In this document: piece after piece, positions 11,452 through 50,000 of the stretch
Layout of the letters: each line of letters starts with the position of its first letter
Numbering within the stretch: the stretch's first letter is position 1
Virus record (IMG/VR): IMGVR_UViG_3300032770_000001
Span: 372,001-436,000 of that record
Direction: 5' to 3' (one strand)
DNA length: 64,000 bases
Program-made: the position numbers and the translations under genes
Notes under the pieces: model-generated
The model's database searches: none
The model's input: the letters and a program-made list of their open reading frames with translations, nothing else
Told to the model about the DNA's origin: nothing

Positions 11452-13557
11452 TTACCGCATTCTTTTGCCGCCCATTTTTCGGACCCAACGTGGGTCTGAA
11501 CGGCGTCCTGCGCCGGGGATTCCCGGCGTTCCCATACCCGGCACCCCGCCGCCCATGCGCTGCATACGCTCGCGAAGACGGAGTTCCGCCATGCTGACAC
11601 CCTCAGTGGAAATCAGGCGTCCGGCACCACGGGCTGCCTGCTGTTGAACCACGAGCGAACGGCCTGTCGGGTCGAGTCGCAGGTTGCCCTGTTCGATGAG
11701 CCATTTCTGAGCGAGCAGAGCCACAAGCTGAGTCGCGTCCACCATGTCGTCATGGGCTCCCTTTTCAATCGGGGCGTGCACGCGGATGCGATACTTGGAT
11801 ATGACATCGGTTTCCACCATCTTGATTTCATCCACGTATTTCTGGATGTCGGGGAAGAAGGCGGTTTTGTCGTTGATGAAACCACGGAGAGCATACGCCA
11901 TCTCCGAGTTGATCGCCGGGGTCAGGTTCACAAGCTCCATGCCGCGAATGTCGTTCTGTTCGAGCAGGGCGATAAGCTGACGACCTGCGTGTTGGTCGCA
12001 GACACCTTGGTAGCATGGCAACTGTTTGTTCATGTAGTTCAGCCATACGAGCACGTCACCCAGCGGCAGAACTTGGAAGTCTACGTATTTCTTCTTACCT
12101 TCCGGATCAGGTTTGACGCCCGGACCTATGAATTCTTCGCCGCAGATCATGCGGTCGATGTAGTCATAAACGAGCACGATACCGTGGTTGACGCCTTGAA
12201 CTTCAGGACGCTGACGGAACTCAAGGTGACCGATAGCCAGAGCGGTAGCGTCAGACGCGGTCGAATTCGGATCGGTGACGTTGATGCCGCCAAGGTCAAG
12301 ACCCCAGAAGTATTGGCGTCCCAACTGCTCAAGGCTGAATCGGGTAAGATTCTTACGACCGGGATCGATACATGCACGCACGTCCACTTCGCGGACATAC
12401 GATTCGGACGATTCCAAGAATTGTCCGCCGTATTCGGCCTTGAAAGTCAATGGGTTCTTACGGTGCTTGTCACGCAAGAAGCCCGGTTTGAGGGCTGGGT
12501 TCATTTCCGCTGATGAACAGGCAAGCACGAACGTGGGGTTGTCGTCGTTGACGCCATCTTGCAATGCCATCTTGTAAAGGTCGTACATCATACCGACCTT
12601 CTTGAGAGGCGAGGAGATCGACAGAATCATCGAGTCCTGATATTGAACTTTCTGGGTGACTCGCTTACCGTTCTCATCGAGAACCGGATTCCCATTCTCA
12701 TCTTCAGCATCGACAGTTTCGTAGTGATGGAAATCACCAGCAGCCGGGGTTGCGGCGACGTACATGTCTTCTGACGTTGAACCTTTTTCGGAACGGAAGT
12801 GAGCGAACTCGTCCAATGCTAGGAAGACCGATGAAGGGCCGCGCACGGCGTTGGTGGTGCAAGGCAGTGACCACACAACGACCGATGGCTTAGCGTCTTT
12901 GCGATCTTGATCGGCACGCGAACGGAACGTCAGGCTCTTTGAGTTGTTGTCTTTCAGGTAACCATTGAACCACTGCGCACGGTTGACGGCAGCCGAGAGT
13001 TTCTTGAACAAACGTCCGGCTCCGGTTTCGTCCTGAGCAAGGAAAGTGAAATCAATCTGTGAGCCATCTGCCATGCCGAAGTGCTGCTGCGGCGAGTAGA
13101 TATTGAGAAGCAGGTAGAGGCGGTACGCGGCGATGGCGGCGACAAGTTCAGATTTACCACCACGGCGACCGCAGAATATGACGCCTTCGTTGAAGCCACG
13201 AGCCGGGATGTCCCGCCAGTCGTCGATGTTGCAGCGACCCTCTTCGTAGCAGATATGCAGGTATTCTTCTTCCGTGACTGTGCGAATGAGTTGGTCACGG
13301 AAAGTGTTCCACATGGGCACCATGCCCCATGGGGTGCCGTCCGGTTGCTTGATAGTGTCCGCCCAGTACGGCTTATAGTCGAAGGGAACCGCACACAGAG
13401 CCTTGAGGATCACTCGCTGAACGGGGCGCAGAATAATGCCCGTGCCGCCCGGTCCTTCGACGAAGTCGATGGCGTTCAGCTTATGTGTTGGGTCATCGAT
13501 ATGGTCGAGCGTCAGATCGGCTACGACCGACTTATTCTTACCACGTTGAATCGGCAT
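11452..13557 (-). CDS. terL: Terminase large subunit
   Basis: LRPVQ adenine-binding motif, Walker A CGRRGGKS, Walker B LALDE, coupling ISSP, nuclease GLDLG and HDDMVDA. Confidence 0.92.
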   Translation of the reverse strand: MPIQRGKNKSVVADLTLDHIDDPTHKLNAIDFVEGPGGTGIILRPVQRVILKALCAVPFDYKPYWADTIKQPDGTPWGMVPMWNTFRDQLIRTVTEEEYLHICYEEGRCNIDDWRDIPARGFNEGVIFCGRRGGKSELVAAIAAYRLYLLLNIYSPQQHFGMADGSQIDFTFLAQDETGAGRLFKKLSAAVNRAQWFNGYLKDNNSKSLTFRSRADQDRKDAKPSVVVWSLPCTTNAVRGPSSVFLALDEFAHFRSEKGSTSEDMYVAATPAAGDFHHYETVDAEDENGNPVLDENGKRVTQKVQYQDSMILSISSPLKKVGMMYDLYKMALQDGVNDDNPTFVLACSSAEMNPALKPGFLRDKHRKNPLTFKAEYGGQFLESSESYVREVDVRACIDPGRKNLTRFSLEQLGRQYFWGLDLGGINVTDPNSTASDATALAIGHLEFRQRPEVQGVNHGIVLVYDYIDRMICGEEFIGPGVKPDPEGKKKYVDFQVLPLGDVLVWLNYMNKQLPCYQGVCDQHAGRQLIALLEQNDIRGMELVNLTPAINSEMAYALRGFINDKTAFFPDIQKYVDEIKMVETDVISKYRIRVHAPIEKGAHDDMVDATQLVALLAQKWLIEQGNLRLDPTGRSLVVQQQAARGAGRLISTEGVSMAELRLRERMQRMGGGVPGMGTPGIPGAGRRSDPRWVRKMGGKRMR

Positions 13558-13602
13558 CTACTTAAAGGATTCGGTATTGGGAGGATTTAATTTGGTAGGA
13601 GC

Positions 13603-13640
13603 AAAAGCTGGGGGCGACAGATGCGTAGTCTGTCGCCCCT
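13603..13640 (-). terminator. Strong hairpin / terminator
   Basis: GGGGCGACAGA/TCTGTCGCCCC 11-bp stem followed by CAGCTTTT. Confidence 0.6.
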
Positions 13641-13697
13641 GAGAACTCCTCCCACACATGGTGGGTGAGCTACTAATGCATTGGAAAGTTCAAAATT

Positions 13698-13803
13698 TGG
13701 AGACCCGGACGGGAGTTGAACCCGCAACCACCCGGTTAACACCGGGTGCTCTGTTGAGGTCTGGGTTAGGGCCAGCCGCTCTGCCTGATTGAGCTACCGG
13801 GTC
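13698..13803 (-). tRNA. Atypical tRNA-like gene with two anticodon-like arms (nominal CUA and GUU)
   Basis: Perfect acceptor stem GACCCGG/CCGGGTC-T-CCA, D arm GCTC/GAGC, T arm GCGGG-TTCAACT-CCCGT; 106 nt. Confidence 0.75.
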
Positions 13804-13809
13804 GTTTTC

Positions 13810-13971
13810 CTAATCACCCTCAGTATCTCGCGTGTACTCGATTGAGTCAATAATGAGCACGCCTTCGGTATCGCGATGACAGCGAGCGGTAACACCGTAA
13901 TCGCCTTTCGGATCGCCGAGGTCAAGTCCCCAGAAATACGTTGTCGCGAGACCTTGATTCTGAGTGTCCAT
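13810..13971 (-). CDS. 53-aa mini-protein resembling the start of the TerL nuclease domain (not in ORF track)
   Basis: MDTQNQGLATTYFWGLDLGDPKGDYGVTARCHRDTEGVLIIDSIEYTRDTEGD; YFWGLDLG is identical in TerL; GGAG RBS. Confidence 0.65.
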   Translation of the reverse strand: MDTQNQGLATTYFWGLDLGDPKGDYGVTARCHRDTEGVLIIDSIEYTRDTEGD

Positions 13972-17387: not shown

Positions 17388-20300
17388 CGCCTTCCGTTTC
17401 CTTCTCCACTACGAAATCTGCAAGATCACCAATCCCAAGATCGATTGGACGTTCTTCATCCTCTTCGTCACCGTAAGCAGCACAGCCTTGCTTTTCAGCC
17501 AGAGTCCACGTGCTTGCGAGTTCCAACTGATTCACAAGTTCATCAGTGCTGGTGCCGGAATCAACCAGTTCACCATCCGCGTAAATTTCCCAGCCGTTGG
17601 GAGACGTATGGACAACCACGCGATTACCAGTTTCCGGACCCATGAACGTACCGGGATCGCCTTCATCAGACCAACCCATGCCGCTCAGGGCTTCAACATA
17701 CGGGAACTCCCCAGTTTCAGTCTGCGGAGCCGCTTTGACTGATGCCGCGAAATGAGCCGGGTTGACAGTGTCGGTTGAGGCCGAATCACTCGTCAAGTCC
17801 TTCTTGTCCGCGTCCACAGCTTTGCGTGCCTGAGCGAGGTCACCATCGATTGCTTCCGCCGTCTTAGACTTCTCGACGTTGGTTTTCGGAACCATCGGAT
17901 CAGCCCCACCTTTTTCATTGGATGGGTTATCGACCGTGTCCGCGACCTTCGCCGCTTCCGGAACCGACTTAGTTGGCTGCGAGATGTCCTTGTCAACCGT
18001 GTCCGGGCTGACCGTCTTGGACTTCGCTTCGGAGATGTCGCCGCTCACGTCGTCGGCAGTCTTCGCCTTCTCGTGGTCGGTCTTCACTTCCATTGCACCT
18101 GCCCCACCCGCTTCGTTTGCCGGATTGTCGGCGGTGTCAGCCTGCTTTGCATTGTACTGTTCGTGACGCTGCACGGTCGGGGACAAGTTATCGCCCTCGC
18201 CTGCACCGCCGTCACCGGAGTCTGACCCCTCAGAAACTTCGTTGTCAGCCACGTCCGCTGTTTTCTCGCTGCCCATCATCGGTTTGGTCATGTGATGAAG
18301 GGACAGATCACGCACGTCAGACTGGTCAATCGGCTTCTCGCCCGTGGTGTATCCGGACGGCCAACGGTTGTAATCATCGCGGCAGTCACCGTAGAAGTCA
18401 GGCGGGTGTGTCCCACCGCAGCTTCCACAATCGACCCAGTCATCCGGTGGATTTTCGGCATCAATTGGCGGCGGATTCGTCGCGCTGTAAGGCGCACCTG
18501 CCGTCTTTTCCTCGGAGGCGAAGTAGTTCATCTCTTCGTCGCCAAGCTCCGGCTCTTCATCTTCTGCGTAGGTGAACACGCCAGACGCCATAGCGTCTTC
18601 AGCGCAACCGTCGCAGAACGCGGTTCCAGTCACGTCATCCATGTCAACACGACGGAGAATACAGCTTGCTGGAACAAGGCACTGTGCTACGCCTTCGTGC
18701 TGTGGGCAGCCGGGATCGGTGCATTCACAGTCGCCTTCGACTTGGTAAAACCCGTCCGGAGCAGCCGTCTTTTCCTCGGATGCCATCAGGGTATCCATCT
18801 CATCGAGTGAGGATTCGATATCGAAATCGTTCTCACGCGGGTCGCGGTGAGTGTAGACCTCAGCCGTCAACGGGCTGTCAGCCGGAGTCCACGATGTGCG
18901 GCACTTACCGCATTCCCATTCGAAGCTGGATGCAGCACCGATGTGGTAAATGCGATCTTCTTCGGGCAGATCGGTACCGAACGGTTCAGAGCAATTGTCG
19001 CAGTAGTTCACGTCGTCCCACGAATAGGCGGACACGGCACCGCACTTCGGACACTCTTCAGCCGAACCGTCAGCCAGCAGCGATTCCTTAAGGCCCTGAG
19101 CATCAACTTCATAACCTTCGGAATCGACCGCAGCTTGCTTAGATTCAGCGTCGTCACTCTTCTCTTCGGAGCCGGACTCTTCCTTTTTCTCGGACTTGCC
19201 CTTCTCGCGATTCTTCGACCATTCGGACTTGGCACCACCGCCGCCCTTGTCTTCGTCTTCCTTGGTCTTCTCATTTTCGAAGTCAGATTCCTGATTCCCA
19301 GCTTCCGAGTCAGAGACCGACTTGTCGTCTTCCGGGGTATCGGATTCCCACGGCTTCTCCCACTCAGGCTTTTCGCTGCCTTCGGGAGCATCTTCACCGG
19401 GGAGAGGAACAACCGGAGCCGGACCGAACTCTTCCATGTTGTCGAAGATGTCGTCCTCGGTCATCGGGATGTCGGCGAACTTGGCACGCTGAGAGCCGTA
19501 CTTGCGCTGCATCTCTTCTTCGCGCTTCTGTGCCGCCGTCTTGGATTTCTGCGAACGCGCATCGTAAGACTCGCGGGTTGGGCCGCCAGCAATCAAACCC
19601 GCGACGATTTCAGACGCCGCGCTTTTCTTGATCGAAGCGAACTTGCCGCCCTGCTTGTTGTAGTGCTCGTATTCGGAGTGGATCAGGTTGTCGTCGCCGA
19701 CATACAGATCATCCTCACCGAACGACTTGGCGACTTCAGTGAGCTTGTCACCCAAACCGCCCCCATCCAACGCCTGACGATCCCAGAATCCTGCACCGTG
19801 ACCGTTGCGGGTCAGCCAGAAATCGTGTCCAGCTTGCTCTTCTGACGACCACTCACCGTGTCCGTCGTAGCCGGGACGCTGGTAAGCCTCGTTGAGCAGG
19901 GCTTCAGCTTTCTGTTGGAACGCCTGACAATCCTGAGACATCTTGTTGAGCGTCTCTGGAGCGATGTCGCGGATATCGTAATTGCGATCCAAAGGCTCAC
20001 CGCCACTCGGATCGGAGTTGTCATTCGAAGACCACAGGGCGGCTGTAACATAAGCCGTCGTGAAGTCATCAAGCTGCTGAGCAAGCTTCTTCATAGAGCC
20101 AGCCCACCATGCTGCTTTCTTCGACTTCTGTTTCTTGAGCGAAGATGACATCGACATCGGATTCGGCCCCCACTTGCCAGCGTCGATCTCAGCCTGATGA
20201 TCGAACGTTGCGTGATGTGCCTGATTGTCCTGACTCATGCTGGCAGCGTATTCCATCATGTGGTCTTTGTGTTTTTCGAGACCCTTCTTGTCGCCAACAC

Positions 20301-25718: not shown

Positions 25719-26162
25719 CTAGGCGGGGTTAACAGTCGCAGCCTCAACCTTCGGTGCCAAGTAGATCGAGGCACGAAGCAGGGTCTTTGAATCCTGAAAG
25801 ACCTGAAGACCCTTCTGGCAGTCCGAGCAAATCAACCCATGGACGTGACCATCGCGGTAATCGACCACCGTCTTGCGGTTGTAGAGCACCAACGGGCGTT
25901 CGCAGATCGGGCATTGCTGATTCTGAGTACGCCACATGTTGAGATACTCTCCCGGCTGCATGTTGAACTGAGCGAGAAGGTAGGCGTCCTGAACCTTGAC
26001 CTTCGTCCAGAAGGTGCCGCAATAGGCATTGTGGCAGGTTTTGCAGTAGTGGGACTTGCCGGAGGCGGTGCGTTTGTTCTCACCGAAGGCACCTAAAGGC
26101 AACCATTTCTTGCACTTGTTGCACCACTTCTCTTTTTCGTTGAACAGCCGTTTACGTCCCAT
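25719..26162 (-). CDS. Endonuclease VII-like protein (degenerate active site)
   Basis: KWCNKCK..YCKTC N-terminus; QNQQCPIC...VDY..GHVHGLICSDCQKGL (DH replaced by DY, CN by CQ). Confidence 0.7.
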   Translation of the reverse strand: MGRKRLFNEKEKWCNKCKKWLPLGAFGENKRTASGKSHYCKTCHNAYCGTFWTKVKVQDAYLLAQFNMQPGEYLNMWRTQNQQCPICERPLVLYNRKTVVDYRDGHVHGLICSDCQKGLQVFQDSKTLLRASIYLAPKVEAATVNPA

Positions 26163-26265
26163 GCAATCCTCCTATTTCCTCTCTAAAAATAGGGATTTGA
26201 TAGTCGGCGAATTCGCCCAATATCAAACCGTAGTTAGAGGAAACTTTCCTTAGAGGCACACATCA

Positions 26266-27597
26266 ATGGCAACTCCAACACTGGTTTCAGCGGGTTACGG
26301 CAACCCGGTAGTCTACGGTGGGCACATTCAGAACGCTTGGTCAAACAACCAAGGCGACAACATTGTGGTCAGCCCGACCGCTGGCAACACGCTTGTCGTG
26401 TTCGTCTTCGGTTTCCGCACCTACGATCCGTTCAACTTGTTCCACAACACAACTCCGGTTGTCCCGACTGGCTGGTCCGTCGGTATCAACGACATGACTC
26501 TGACCCCGACGATCACGGACAACTCCGGTGACTCTGTTGCCGTCACGTCCGTCACTGAGACCACAACGGCACTGACCCTGACTGATGTCAACACGGCGGT
26601 GGGTGGTTCGGCAGTCTACGATGGCACCATCACTGGTGGTGCTGCGAACGCTCTGGCTGGCTACAAGTTCCAAGTAGCAGGCTTTACGACCGCAGCCAAC
26701 AACGGCACATTCCTTTGCACGGCGTCTACCGCGACGAGCTTGACTCTGTCGAACGCAGCCGCAGTTGCCGAGACGCACGCCGCAACCGCGACGTACTCGT
26801 CTGTGGCACTGACGACCGCGAGCAACAACTTCGGCGTCGGCGACGTAGTCGTTCTGGCTGGCTTTACCACGCAGACGTGGTTGAACGGTCAGTCGCAGGC
26901 TGTTGTGTCTTCCGGCTCGACCTTCAAGGTCAATGACAGCACGTTCCACGCAACCTCCGGTCCGACTGCACAGGCAGCCGCAACCGCAGCCCGTAACTCC
27001 GGCAACGACTGGGTCACGGTCACTGGCAAGGTTCAGAACGGCGACGTGGATTACACCCCGTCCGGTGTGACCGACTTTACCGTCTCGTCCAAGTGGGACT
27101 TGAACGGCAAGTACCCGTCCGTTATCGCCTACTACGCGACAAACGTTTCGGGCGGCACCTACAACCTGAACGTCAACTCCTGCTATCAGGATGGCACGAT
27201 CCGCCCCGGCGATCTCGCGGCTGGCAAGCCGTACTTCGATGGCGGCGTGGACATCCACGTTCTGGAATTCTCCGGTCTGTTGACTTCCGGCATCGGCGAT
27301 CAGTCCGCAGGTGCAATGACGGCGTCCAACCCGGCGACGGTTTCTTACACCACGGCGGCGAGCGGCGACCTGATCCTCACGGGCGGTCTCATGAAGAACG
27401 GCAACGCCTTCTCGACCTATGCTCCAGTTGGCACCACGGGCACTTTGATGCTCGCGACTGGCAAGGGCGTAAGCTCGCAGGCTCACTGGGGCATCCAGAT
27501 GCAGCTTCAGACTGCGAACGGCGCAATCACCCCCGGCTTTACGAACCCACTGGGTTACGAAATGGCCGTGGTTTCACTCGCACTCAAGCACGCTTAA
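26266..27597 (+). CDS. Virion structural protein (T/A/G/S-rich, beta-barrel repeats)
   Basis: Strongly biased codon usage; NNFGVGDVVVLAGFTTQTWLNGQ domain; own terminator. Confidence 0.65.
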   Translation: MATPTLVSAGYGNPVVYGGHIQNAWSNNQGDNIVVSPTAGNTLVVFVFGFRTYDPFNLFHNTTPVVPTGWSVGINDMTLTPTITDNSGDSVAVTSVTETTTALTLTDVNTAVGGSAVYDGTITGGAANALAGYKFQVAGFTTAANNGTFLCTASTATSLTLSNAAAVAETHAATATYSSVALTTASNNFGVGDVVVLAGFTTQTWLNGQSQAVVSSGSTFKVNDSTFHATSGPTAQAAATAARNSGNDWVTVTGKVQNGDVDYTPSGVTDFTVSSKWDLNGKYPSVIAYYATNVSGGTYNLNVNSCYQDGTIRPGDLAAGKPYFDGGVDIHVLEFSGLLTSGIGDQSAGAMTASNPATVSYTTAASGDLILTGGLMKNGNAFSTYAPVGTTGTLMLATGKGVSSQAHWGIQMQLQTANGAITPGFTNPLGYEMAVVSLALKHA

Positions 27598-30844: not shown

Positions 30845-31020
30845 GCCCCGATTATATCAGTCTCCTCGCGTTCCGACAATGAATGTCAGATCGCCGTCCC
30901 GGTGCCTGTTGATGTGGCCGAAACGCCGCTGGCATTTCACCCGGCGTGGCGATGTATCCAGATAGGCGGGGCAGCGTTTGCCGAGTAATCCGAGCACCCA
31001 ACCCCAGAACGTCCAGTCTC

Positions 31021-31248
31021 TCATGCGTATTCCTTCTGAACTCGTTCTTCGATGTGCTTGTACTGATGCCGCATCTGCATGATCGCCGATTGCGGCAGGT
31101 ATTCTTTCCCGCACTCCTCGCACTTCACCGCAGAGGCGATACCGAGACAGAACTTGGACTCAATCGCGACAAAGCCACGTGCCTTCCAGACATCTTTCCA
31201 CCCGGCGATGCGATAGCGATTCGGGTCTTTGGCTCTCATTCTGCCCAC
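31021..31248 (-). CDS. Small zinc-finger protein
   Basis: CEECG...H...H. Confidence 0.5.
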   Translation of the reverse strand: MGRMRAKDPNRYRIAGWKDVWKARGFVAIESKFCLGIASAVKCEECGKEYLPQSAIMQMRHQYKHIEERVQKEYA

Positions 31249-31751
31249 CCCAACTCAGCCAGAATCGCCTTACCCTTCTTGGTGCTCGGATTGACGATGC
31301 ACTTGGTCAGGCCATCGACGATTTTCCACGTCTCAGTCGGGGTCAACATGATCGCCTTGAACTCGCGACCCTCGCGATGCGCACGCACCGCCCGGTGGTT
31401 GCCGTCGATCAGGATCGCGGACATCTTCGGACCGCCATCCGGCTTCGCCCATAACACGGTCGCCAGAATGCCGGGGCGCTCCGGGTCTTGCAGGTGCGCC
31501 AGATGCGGCTCGTTGATATAGACCATGCTCATGTGGTGCGACTTCTTGCCGCAGGAGCACTGCGAGATCACGACGCCGCAGTTCAGGCACTTCTCCTCTT
31601 CCAGAGGCAGCCCGATACCCTCCAAGAAAGCCTTCGGCACCGTGCGCAACGGGCGCTCCGGCGTCACCAGCTTGTTGGCGGCGGCGACATCAAACTCCAA
31701 TGCCAGCATCCGAAACCGTTCGTTCTCGTAATTTCCGCAGTTATCGCACAT
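31236..31751 (-). CDS. ParB/Srx-like domain protein
   Basis: RPGILA...ILIDGNHRAVRA. Confidence 0.6.
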   Translation of the reverse strand: MCDNCGNYENERFRMLALEFDVAAANKLVTPERPLRTVPKAFLEGIGLPLEEEKCLNCGVVISQCSCGKKSHHMSMVYINEPHLAHLQDPERPGILATVLWAKPDGGPKMSAILIDGNHRAVRAHREGREFKAIMLTPTETWKIVDGLTKCIVNPSTKKGKAILAELGWAE

Positions 31752-47014: not shown

Positions 47015-50000
47015 TTAGATTCGGCGACCCCACTGGTAGTTGATCGAAACGTTGGTTCCAGTGATAGTCTGCACGCCGCCGTCCTGACCACCGTTCTGGA
47101 ACTGTGTGAAGCCGAAGAACGGGTGCACTTTGTAGCAACCCAGCGAAGCCCCAGCCGGAGCGTTCGTCGGGTTCTGCACGGCGTACCAGTCCCACCAGCC
47201 ATGAACCGCAGCACTCTCAAGGCTGCTGTACGGAGCCAGCAAGTTCGGACTCTGACTGTCTATGCTGATGTTCGCCACGTCGGTCGCGATACCAAGGCAG
47301 TTGGGATCGAACGAAGCTGCCGGAGCCGTGCCAACAGCGGCGAGGCTGTTACCCAGACGAGCCGCATCTATTGCTACCTGTGAGGCGTTGTAGTCAACCA
47401 GATAGAACGGGCCGAACTCAGTGATTGTGTTGCTGGTCGCGGAATTGCGCCCATGCTGCACAGTCACACGAAGATTCGTGATACCAGTTTGACGGGCAAA
47501 CGAGTACGCATAACCGTTATGGGCACGCCACAGCGGAGTGATTTGCGTGTAGCTAGTTCCGCCGTTGGTTGAAACTTCAAACTTCAAACCACGGCACAAA
47601 TTGCGATTCTGCAAGAATTTGTAAGTTGAACCCTCAGCAGGGTTGACTTGCGAACCGTAGCTGTAAAACACCAGATCAACGAAGTTGCAGGTTGTCTGCA
47701 ATACTGAAGTGCTGAGACGGAACGTGCTGACCGATGGCAAGCTGGAGTTCGTTGCCGTGATGTTCAAGCGGTAGTAACGGTACGAACCCGGTGTCGTCAC
47801 ATTATAGGCGTAGCCGCGTGACGCCGATACACCAGTGCGTGTATCCAGCGTAGTCCACGAGGAGTTATCATTCGAACCCTGCAACTGGAAATTCGTCGGC
47901 AGACCGCTGCTTGGGTTATCCGAAGTGTCATAAACGGTGCGGAAACCATAAGACAGAACTGTCTGAGCATTGCCGAGACCGAGATCGATTTCGAGCCATT
48001 GTGTCGGAGAGCCACTAGCCTGCCAGAACTCTTGCGGGTTATTCATGAAGGCTTTCCAGCTTGCGGTAGTCGTACCGCTTTGTGAACTGCTGGAAGCCGT
48101 GTAAGTGTTGGAGCCCACCGTCCATGAGTACGGGTTGCTGCCTGTGACGATGTTAACGTTCGCCGGAGCATAAGCATAGCTTCCGGTAGCGAATCCGTTC
48201 GGCGTCCATACCAGAACCAGCGGTGAGGCGTCGAAGCCTACGTTAGAGCCGTCCAATTTGTTCCACGAAGCCGACGTTGTCCAGCCCTTATAAGCTGTAG
48301 TCAACGACGCAGTGTTCGGCGTTGTGCTGGTCGGAGCAGTCCAAGTCGCACCACCCGGATCGGTGTCGATAAAGTACGGAGTGATGGCTTCTTCTTGAGC
48401 AATGGTGCGGCTATCAGTGTTGGTGAACGTCTGACCCGCGAATTGTGCCCACGAAGAGCGCAACTTACGAGCAAACTTGGTGTTGCCATAGCACATGTTC
48501 CACGTGTGGAACTCGCCGTTAGTCCATGAAGTCGAAGACAACGGGCCGAACTGTACAGCCAAACCATACGGCAGGTTGATCGTGCTGGTGTAGCCGCCAG
48601 CATACGCACCCACAGTGTAGGGGTTGCTCGAAGCGTCGGAGAAACTGTCCGCCATTACCCAATTGCCGCCCGAATATTTCCAGTAAGTTGGCAGGAATGC
48701 CATGCCCTGCCCAGCCGCACGACCATAGGTCGCGTTTGAGGGCAAACCATCCTGTCCACCACCAGCGCAGCGCAAGAACACCATGTAATTGTCGGTCAAC
48801 GAAACTGGGAACATCCACGCCCCACGGTCGAGGAACTGTCCGGAAACCGGAGTCAAATCCATCCAAGACCAATAATCTTGCTGAACGCTTTGAATCGATG
48901 GAGGATTGCTGCTGTAGCTGTTGCGTTGAATCAACGACAAGCTGGTCGGCGAACTCCAGTTAAACCCCGGAGGAGCCAAGTAAATTGGGCACGTAGCGTT
49001 GTTCGAGTGAATCGGCTGATGCGGGAAGAACGTGGTGCGGTCGGCGTTCGTCGCATAGTCACGTGCGTGCGTAATCGAGATCGGCTGCGTGGCCGGGTTG
49101 AACTGGCTCGGATTGAAGCTATCGTTCGCGAACAATGTGCTTGACGCGACAGCGGTCAACTGCGTATTGCTCAGCGAAGCCGTAGAGCCGGATACGTTGA
49201 GTGTAAAGACCGATGCGCAATGCCAGCTACCCTGAACCAACAGGATGTTTGGAGCCACGTCATGCATGAATGCGTTGATGTCGTAGAACCAAAAATCTGG
49301 GTTCTGGCTTGGTGAAGTCGCATTGGCACCGAAGTTCGTACCGTACTGAATCGGTGAAGAACCGTTGATCTTGGACGTGTTCCATGTCGCAGCGACCGGA
49401 TCGTATGCCTGCACTTGCCAGTTGACATTAGTGACTGCACCGAAAGCGTTCGATACAGTGTACGGGCCGCCGCCCGAAACGCTAACGTCCTCGCACAGAA
49501 TGTAGAGCTTGCCATCGCGAGGGGAAATCATCTCGCTCAATGAACGACCGTTATGACGCCCGGTGTTTCCACTGAAGGTGATCGAACCCCATGCGCCCGT
49601 ACCGATGAAGTAATTGACGACACCAATGCGAGCCGTAGCGACCAAGCCCGTCTGTGTAGTGCGCGGATCGGCTGTCATGGTGCCGTAAAGCGCCCACAGT
49701 TCGTAACAAGTCGCCGTACCTGTGTCGGAGGCGTTGGTGTAGTTGCCGACCGTTGTCGGGACTTGGAAGCTGCTTGTGGATAATCCGGTTGCCGACACCA
49801 CATAGGTGATGTTGTTAATTCCGGACTCCTGCGTGCCTGTGATGTTCACCACATCGCCAGCTTGGAAATTATTTGCTGCCGTCACAGTCAGAACGCCGCC
49901 AGTTGCGGAAGTCGCCGTGATCGGCCCGGTGATTGTGCGCGTCTTCAATGCGCCGTAAGCCTCGCCCACGTGCGCAACTGCTGGAGCATTGGTCGCGAAA

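Follow-up and report, generated by a model that had tools for sequence, protein, structure and literature searches.

A 106-base tRNA-like RNA encoded on the minus strand at positions 13698–13803 of the window (the whole 64,000-nucleotide stretch of DNA analysed here, bases 372001–436000 of the 455,708-bp IMG/VR wetland phage record G000) is on balance probably functional, one of a small and conserved group of tRNA(CUA)-type RNAs in phages. Judged from synteny and shared sequence, its orthologues in related huge phages are ordinary 75-nt tRNA(CUA) genes of the amber-suppressor type, to which it adds about 30 nucleotides made up of a mini-hairpin of the form CTC-NNNN-GAG, the dinucleotide CA, and a second hairpin of 5–8 bp. 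The original prediction had described a minus-strand tRNA-like RNA with two hairpins and a CTC-AACA-GAG hairpin between its D and T arms; its reading of 13698–13803 agrees with the sequence letter for letter, and these elements are all directly visible there.

The G000 genome has a GC content of about 54% and contains 62–64 tRNA genes in several clusters together with a tmRNA, the presence of which points to a bacterial host. The two-arm RNA is solitary, with no adjoining tRNA, and lies approximately 140 nt upstream of the large terminase subunit gene (11452–13557, minus strand; 701 aa, matching PHROGs 9, 2 and 17415, 'terminase large subunit'), whose homologues anchor the comparisons of synteny below, and downstream of a 1051-aa gene to which no function is assigned. 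A promoter-like site (TTGACT-17-GATACT, 13822–13850, minus strand) is positioned directly upstream of the RNA, although it comes from a consensus scan alone that returned two sites where 0.7 were expected, and is not evidence of function. Two hairpins can be read directly downstream on the same strand within 13611–13665, one at 13651–13665 and the other, GC-rich and terminator-like, at 13611–13639; similar hairpins follow the 3′ end of the plain tRNA(CUA) in the related loci L001 and L131, and by this similarity the segment is probably a conserved terminator region preceding the terminase gene. Contigs from three other wetland metagenome runs cover the RNA with zero differences and zero gaps (coverage of the region is 13397–13897 in X2, 13660–13816 in X4, and 13590–13776 in X3), and an assembly artefact is thus ruled out. 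These are DNA contigs, and no RNA run was found to contain the region.

All of the parts of a tRNA body are present, and all are on the minus strand. The 5′ strand of the acceptor stem (RNA positions 1–7, window 13797–13803) pairs at seven of seven positions with 13702–13708, with pair probabilities of at least 0.98, and is followed by a D arm (positions 10–26, 13778–13794) with a GCTC/GAGC stem of probability 0.91 and a 9-nt loop containing GG. Arm 1 (13760–13776) has a 5-bp stem with probabilities of 0.97–0.99, the top pair of which is a G.A mismatch, and a 7-nt loop, CCCTAAC, with the CUA at 13767–13769. Next come the mini-hairpin CTC-AACA-GAG (positions 46–55, 13749–13758), which has the appearance of a D-arm remnant, and arm 2 (positions 56–75, 13729–13748), an 8-bp hairpin (CACCCGGT / GTTA / ACCGGGTG) with probabilities of 0.99–1.0. 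A GTT linker and the T arm (GCGGG / TTCAACT / CCCGT, with a canonical T loop; 13709–13728) lead into the 3′ strand of the acceptor stem, a discriminator T, and an encoded CCA (13698–13708, by direct reading), the latter being also encoded in 58 of the 61 other ARAGORN-called tRNA genes of G000. The claim that the acceptor, D and T arms and the CCA are intact is thus borne out both by direct reading and by the pair probabilities (0.84–1.0 over the 7-bp acceptor stem, 4-bp D stem and 5-bp T stem). The variable region is 34 nt long, with 11–12 nt, including the mini-hairpin, preceding arm 2.

In the predicted minimum free energy structure (−49.4 kcal/mol, z = −3.6; 0 of 200 shuffled sequences fold as well) arm 1 occupies the anticodon position, with the variable region taken up by the mini-hairpin and arm 2; the acceptor stem, the first D stem, arm 1, arm 2, and the T arm form in the partition function as well. 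The 5-bp stem and TGTTAA loop that had been regarded as a second, Asn-like anticodon arm sit inside arm 2, where the stem is predicted to extend to 8 bp (probability ~0.99–1.0) and to close the UGUUAA to a GUUA tetraloop, unlike an open anticodon loop. Moreover, the 'Asn' GUU is not conserved across the family, the loop being T-N-TTAA (where N is G, T or A) or, in one member, GAAATAA, with only T..TTAA or UAA kept throughout. An Asn-type anticodon function for arm 2 is therefore contradicted by both the predicted tetraloop and the variation among homologues.

The Rfam tRNA model (RF00005) matches the RNA with 46.8 bits against a gathering threshold of 29 (E 7e-7), covering model positions 1–71 completely and treating 33 nt as an insertion. 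Default ARAGORN makes no call at this position and misses all of the family members, but with a relaxed score it reports a tRNA(CUA) whose variable arm is very long. When introns are allowed (-i), ARAGORN instead reports a tRNA-Asn with a 29-nt intron. We have rejected both this parse and the D-loop insertion used in the Rfam alignment, because the helices that each requires have ensemble probabilities of ~0.

Comparison of terminase homologues at 25 IMG/VR loci and in several ENA and NCBI contigs shows what lies at this position in other phages. An ordinary 75-nt tRNA(CUA) is located between the same two genes in L001–L006 (65% TerL identity) and in L131 (83%), and these tRNAs match the two-arm RNA in D arm, variable-loop GGTT, T stem, discriminator T, and CCA, indicating that the ancestral gene at this site was an amber-type tRNA. 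There is no tRNA at the terminase-adjacent site of L132 and more distant relatives. In L133 and L134 the resident tRNA has been replaced by an HNH endonuclease gene and a different tRNA(CUA), of 78 nt, upstream of the terminase (L133:4447–4960), with a 19-nt 3′ remnant of the old gene left directly after them; this arrangement looks like a homing cassette that carries its own tRNA. We note also that the terminase large-subunit homologues of many relatives (L013–L016, L020 and L021; proteins P0009, P0018, P0021 and P0050) are split or lengthened by LAGLIDADG or HNH insertions of the intein type. The original prediction took a normal tRNA in relatives, combined with a unique and unexpressed insert, as arguing against it; the relatives do carry the normal tRNA, but the insert is shared with at least five other elements.

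RNAs with the same layout (acceptor stem, D arm, CUA arm, CTC-NNNN-GAG, second hairpin, T arm, and CCA) are present in five other phage contigs, and those beyond G002 were found using a covariance model built from the window RNA and its homologue in G002 (model R1) plus architecture patterns. The G002 element (192308–192411 of a 332-kb phage) appeared first as a 101-nt Rfam tRNA match in a scan of the whole records of relatives, overturning the idea that the insert is confined to the source contig; it contains a CUA arm, then C, CTC-ACTA-GAG and CA, a hairpin whose loop, TGTTAA, is that of the window RNA, TGGTT, and a T arm. The second-arm loop is GAAATAA in the 105-nt G010 element (138393–138497), TTTTAA in L196 (2706–2809), and TATTAA in both L197 (13524–13630) and L198 (345–451), the last two having G as the discriminator. 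A diverged member of 110 nt in G021 (48481–48590) is 400 nt upstream of TerL, a position like that in G000. The homologues differ at 16–30% of positions and reside in phages spanning 40–55% GC, and thus have not been copied from each other recently. The two-arm elements of G002 and G010 each have two ordinary tRNA(CUA) genes beside them, and the matching slot in G001 contains the plain form, while the 180-kb phage G029 (40% GC, standard code) has just two tRNA genes, a tRNA-Thr and a two-arm RNA. The latter (L210:13161–13267) is situated at a convergent gene junction, near a DnaB-like helicase gene with an intein and a QueE-like radical-SAM gene with an HNH domain.

The family appears to be small, although the structural-model search covered a fraction of public phage sequence. 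The exact 19-mer of arm 1 has no match in IMG/VR, and a pattern for the tRNA body with a gap of 18–48 nt retrieves 105 ordinary tRNAs and zero long forms; in the JGI metagenomes the body pattern with a gap of 30–60 nt finds only the source contig and unrelated intron-bearing tRNAs. A blastn search of INPHARED with the region from the window gives no match, and with L197 it gives ordinary tRNAs alone, aligned across the 3′ half. The architecture pattern has no match among the GTDB species genomes, model R1 identifies no further member in 36 other large phage records, and a relaxed pattern adds two matches, both of which are false positives in coding sequence.

Maintenance of the structure is supported by compensatory change. 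In alignment A3, which was fitted to the structural model and comprises seven sequences with one nearly identical pair among them, 96.9% of cells are paired and 19 of the 32 pairs have two-sided changes, distributed as 6/7 in the acceptor stem, 5/5 in arm 1, 5/8 in arm 2, and 3/5 in the T stem. None of 500 shuffled controls reaches these values, and controls in which the pairing is slid along the sequence are at most 51% paired. From an independent MAFFT alignment of six sequences, RNAalifold recovers this fold and counts 14 compensatory pairs. Compensatory substitutions thus maintain each of the four variable stems, and the covariation sought among homologues, as well as the earlier argument that the preserved stems reflect selection on shape, are well supported. 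The two remaining stems behave differently: the D-stem sequence is identical in the six close members, with one one-sided change in the diverged G021, and in the mini-hairpin the stem is invariant in the six close members while its loop varies (AACA, ACTA, GCAA, GAAA, AAAA). RNAalifold departs from the mini-hairpin model here, and pairs GA with the TT or TC 3′ of arm 2.

The CUA is found at positions 34–36 of the arm following the D arm and is conserved in all six close members. In five close homologues the loop of arm 1 is an invariant CUCUAAA, a 7-nt loop with U33, and together with the orthologous ordinary tRNA(CUA) genes this provides good support for the predicted amber reading of arm 1. 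The window RNA itself departs from the U33 rule in having CCCUAAC, with C33. The earlier statement that its arm 1 lacks U33 is therefore correct, but not as a defect specific to this gene, because C33 is found elsewhere in these phages, including the tRNA-Tyr (CCGUAAC) and Gly(UCC) of G000, the Ile(GAU) of three genomes, and the Met and another tRNA(CUA) of G002. Loops with C33 amount to 5–12% of the tRNAs in these phages (G000 92509–92583 and 128737–128829; L172, L219, L221, L224 and L225), and since they recur across the group, the absence of U33 is not evidence of decay. Within G000 the closest match to arm 1 is the C33-bearing tRNA-Tyr at 128737 (13/17 identities), the closest to arm 2 is an Asn arm at 285014 (14/17, which is not an outlier), and the D loop TCAGG is common to the two-arm RNA and the tRNA(CUA) at 25852. 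These similarities are only suggestive, and the arms are too short for similarity to discriminate between internal duplication and capture from a paralogue.

There is no indication that these phages have reassigned TAG. In G000 and G029 the ORF density is 89–90%, TAG accounts for 17–21% of stops, and frames do not stay open beyond TAG more than expected, and on these grounds a TAG-recoded genome is rejected for both; nor is there an in-frame TAG in either the terminase or the 1051-aa neighbour among the 25 relatives. The G000 intervals 25852–25929, 25979–26052, 26227–26302, 30867–31271 and 134039–134362 contain a pair of ordinary tRNA(CUA) genes, a tRNA whose 8-nt loop (TCGCAAGA) might hold a quadruplet anticodon, the tmRNA, and a 218-aa ORF with an RF-1 domain within a tRNA cluster, and G000 uses the standard code despite its tRNA(CUA) genes and this RF-1-domain ORF. 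Recoded phages are reported to have relatives that use the standard code and encode suppressor tRNAs (Borges et al., bioRxiv 10.1101/2021.08.26.457843). The two-arm RNA resembles phage amber suppressor tRNA(CUA) genes in having CUA in a 7-nt loop, a complete tRNA body, and a phage genome as its source, in this case next to the terminase, a late gene. It differs from them in its roughly 30 extra nucleotides, equivalent to one or two added helices, in belonging to phages without TAG recoding, and in being invisible to default ARAGORN. Given the standard code, a suppressor of this type would serve limited or timed read-through or interference with the host, not genome-wide recoding; a strong one would extend many proteins of these phages, which counts against our interpretation.

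The standard code is also one of the reasons for considering that the RNA does not decode at all, but is instead a tRNA mimic, which either diverts, as a decoy or sponge, a host anticodon nuclease or a defence protein that binds tRNAs, or serves a phage enzyme as its substrate. There is no obvious need for an amber suppressor in such phages, phage tRNAs with altered anticodon loops have been proposed to evade host tRNases (PMC10264068), the loops of both arms share an invariant UAA, and the many odd tRNAs in these genomes, with C33 loops and added variable arms, suggest pressure from tRNA-targeting defences. However, conservation of the acceptor stem, T arm, discriminator and CCA, together with a CUA loop that is canonical in the relatives, is what a translating tRNA needs; the orthologues are ordinary tRNA(CUA) genes, and no linked nuclease or defence gene is seen. 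We regard a mimic as possible but rather doubtful, and favor a translating tRNA.

For a translating tRNA(CUA), we take the added module to be an elaborated variable region. Added variable arms are common in these phages, whose Thr, Asn, Arg, Gln and Pro tRNAs also carry them, and as they are conserved on class-I tRNAs this fits the placement of arm 2 in the variable region. These class-I tRNAs are 82–93 nt long, with an extra 3–4-bp hairpin that is often GAAA-capped and is conserved across related huge phages (G000 17526–17611, 283827–283914, 284623–284709 and 284921–285007; L216 and L218 of G001; L219 and L221 of G002). The RNA shares with class II tRNAs (Ser, Leu, bacterial Tyr, Sec) and their amber-suppressor derivatives a stable hairpin placed 3′ of the anticodon arm and 5′ of the T arm; arm 2, at 8 bp with a 4-nt loop, is sized like the variable arms of the phage's own tRNA-Ser genes (6–8 bp) and resembles the 8-bp arm of its tRNA-Ser(CGA), and the family discriminator is T or G. 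In other respects the RNA is not a class II tRNA, as its D arm is of the class-I type, with the 4-bp GCTC/GAGC stem, its acceptor stem and D arm are unlike those of the phage's Ser, Leu and Tyr tRNAs, and 8–11 nt of D-arm-like sequence precede the hairpin. Class II variable regions are roughly 13–24 nt and start 1–2 nt after the anticodon stem, and one of 34 nt with a second small helix counts against our reading, as does the fact that, to our knowledge, nobody has demonstrated that a six-helix tRNA can fit EF-Tu and the ribosome.

Other tRNAs with unusual variable arms offer partial parallels. Allo-tRNAs are defined by an 8/4 or 9/3 split between acceptor and T stem (Mukai et al., PMC5389517), and nov-tRNAs, as cited in the same article, have noncanonical variable arms (Hamashima et al. 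2016). According to what that article says of them, these too are natural tRNAs with long variable arms and unexpected anticodons, including stop anticodons, known from metagenomes and phages, with an identity proposed to be conferred by the variable arm through SerRS. The two-arm family is distinguished from allo-tRNAs by a 7/5 split in all members and by the additional mini-hairpin. Engineered aptamer-tagged tRNAs show that an amber suppressor can still be compatible with translation when its variable arm holds a foreign hairpin (PMC7590224), but these are synthetic and built on an allo-tRNA chassis, whereas the two-arm insert is natural and conserved. The literature that we searched contains no description of a two-hairpin variable region of this type; the phrase 'two anticodon arms' was found in one paper, where it refers to the ordinary variable arm of a chloroplast tRNA-Ser.

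SerRS recognizes a long variable arm and a discriminator of G73 or U73 (PMC5389517), and by analogy with this rule, and with the size and partial sequence likeness of arm 2 to the phage's own tRNA-Ser arms, serine is a speculative candidate for the residue carried. A profile search of the phage, which covered PF00587, found no class-IIb synthetase core. Two further kinds of tRNA-like RNA were observed in these phages. An identical 117-nt RNA in G005 (110200–110316, L184) and G023 (121481–121597, L182) has four hairpins, a T arm and ACCA, and is tRNA-like but not a cloverleaf, scoring 28.7 bits with model R1; and G026 contains a 116-nt tRNA (182597–182712, L189) with an otherwise normal body, the anticodon loop of which is enlarged beside CTCTAA by about 40 inserted nt, making it a different kind of interrupted CUA tRNA.

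We propose a cloverleaf in which arm 1 would be the working anticodon arm and read UAG, as suggested by the 7-nt CUCUAAA loop of the relatives, and in which the mini-hairpin and arm 2 would project from the body in the manner of an oversized class-II arm. The RNA would undergo normal 5′ processing, and with its gene-encoded CCA would be charged with an amino acid for insertion at UAG codons; more speculatively, the extra module might set recognition by a synthetase or a phage factor. The module itself probably originated, we speculate, as a duplicated or captured unit of a D arm and an anticodon arm. Set against this proposal are the absence of U33 from the CCCUAAC loop of the window RNA and the small size of the family, with seven sequences, two of them nearly identical, in an alignment that was itself fitted to the model.

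The repeated D-arm-like sequence raises the question of a second cloverleaf, alternating with the UAG-decoding fold, in which arm 2 takes the anticodon position. In this structure GCTC pairs with the second GAGC, the first GAG pairs with CTC and lengthens arm 1 into a D-loop insertion, and arm 2 acquires class-I geometry with A26 and a 5-nt variable loop (TGGTT/C); a synthetase or other enzyme would read the U-N-U-U-A-A loop, which is like the Asn/Lys anticodon box, in one fold, and UAG would be decoded in the other. Without optimisation, the bare skeleton of the alternative lies 1.1–2.3 kcal/mol above the main fold (1.7–6.8 after optimisation), and the Rfam alignment itself uses the alternative topology. 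In addition, the 3′ half from the second GAGC is 79–87% identical to ordinary phage tRNA-Asn, Gln and Arg genes, arm 2 has the 14/17 identity to the phage's own tRNA-Asn arm, and G021 has a full 4-bp stem only in the alternative topology, with an arm 2 loop of 7 nt. The four strands involved do not differ among the six close members, although all the other stems covary; but GCTC/GAGC is a very common D stem, so invariance need not imply switching, and because the GCTC, GAGC, CTC and GAGC strands are essentially invariant, covariation is compatible with both topologies. Against the alternation are the ensemble probability of ~0 for the alternative D stem in the window RNA and an arm 2 loop of 6 nt instead of 7 in five members, with GAAATAA in G010. 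Lys identity needs A73 and Asn tRNAs have G73, but the family has T or G at this position and most members have T73. It is thus unlikely that the RNA alternates between two states, and a bistable two-module tRNA, with residue identity and codon set by two different anticodon-like arms of one molecule, would be an improbable elaboration of that idea.

It also seems improbable that the module of ~29–30 nt is removed, with a phage nuclease and ligase excising it to leave a 76–77-nt tRNA(CUA) or GUU tRNA. Orthologues do differ by exactly this module at both genomic locations (plain forms in G001, L131 and L001; two-arm forms in G002, G010, the window and G021), and ARAGORN -i models a 29-nt intron. 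But we know of no splicing of short tRNA introns in bacteria, which the tmRNA indicates to be the hosts, and a group I intron would have to be much longer than this insert; the splice form proposed by ARAGORN needs a stem of probability ~0 and a G.G mismatch, and compensatory evolution within the insert points to a use for the hairpin as such. No Rfam family other than tRNA is found in the window, with the insert spanning 29–33 nt, and no bulge-helix-bulge motif is seen by eye at its borders.

The suggestion that the RNA is a chimeric pseudo-tRNA, decaying after an accidental internal duplication or fusion and tolerated because of the two intact tRNA(CUA) genes at G000 25852–26052, could draw on the plain tRNA at this site in the nearest relatives, the C33 of arm 1 and the 6-nt loop of arm 2, and a recombinationally active locus (the HNH gene, new tRNA and 19-nt remnant of L133), but it is very improbable, since broken stems and an unconserved aberrant part are not what is found: every stem of the window RNA is intact, C33 occurs also in conserved tRNAs of the group, and six homologues share the layout with 96.9% pairing and 19 compensatory pairs which, together with the retention of the RNA in the 180-kb G029 genome, which has just one other tRNA gene, exclude a decaying scar.

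If the two-arm RNAs do translate, they would constitute a natural six-helix tRNA architecture beyond the two known classes, showing how much added structure the translation apparatus can accept, and could be taken up directly as candidate orthogonal amber suppressors for expanding the genetic code. Because default ARAGORN misses every member of the family, censuses of phage suppressor tRNAs that use it in this way will undercount them. The added variable arms and C33 loops of these phages may reflect an arms race with host defences that target tRNAs. The family also sharpens the question of why giant phages with a standard code keep amber-reading tRNAs, with up to three in a single genome.
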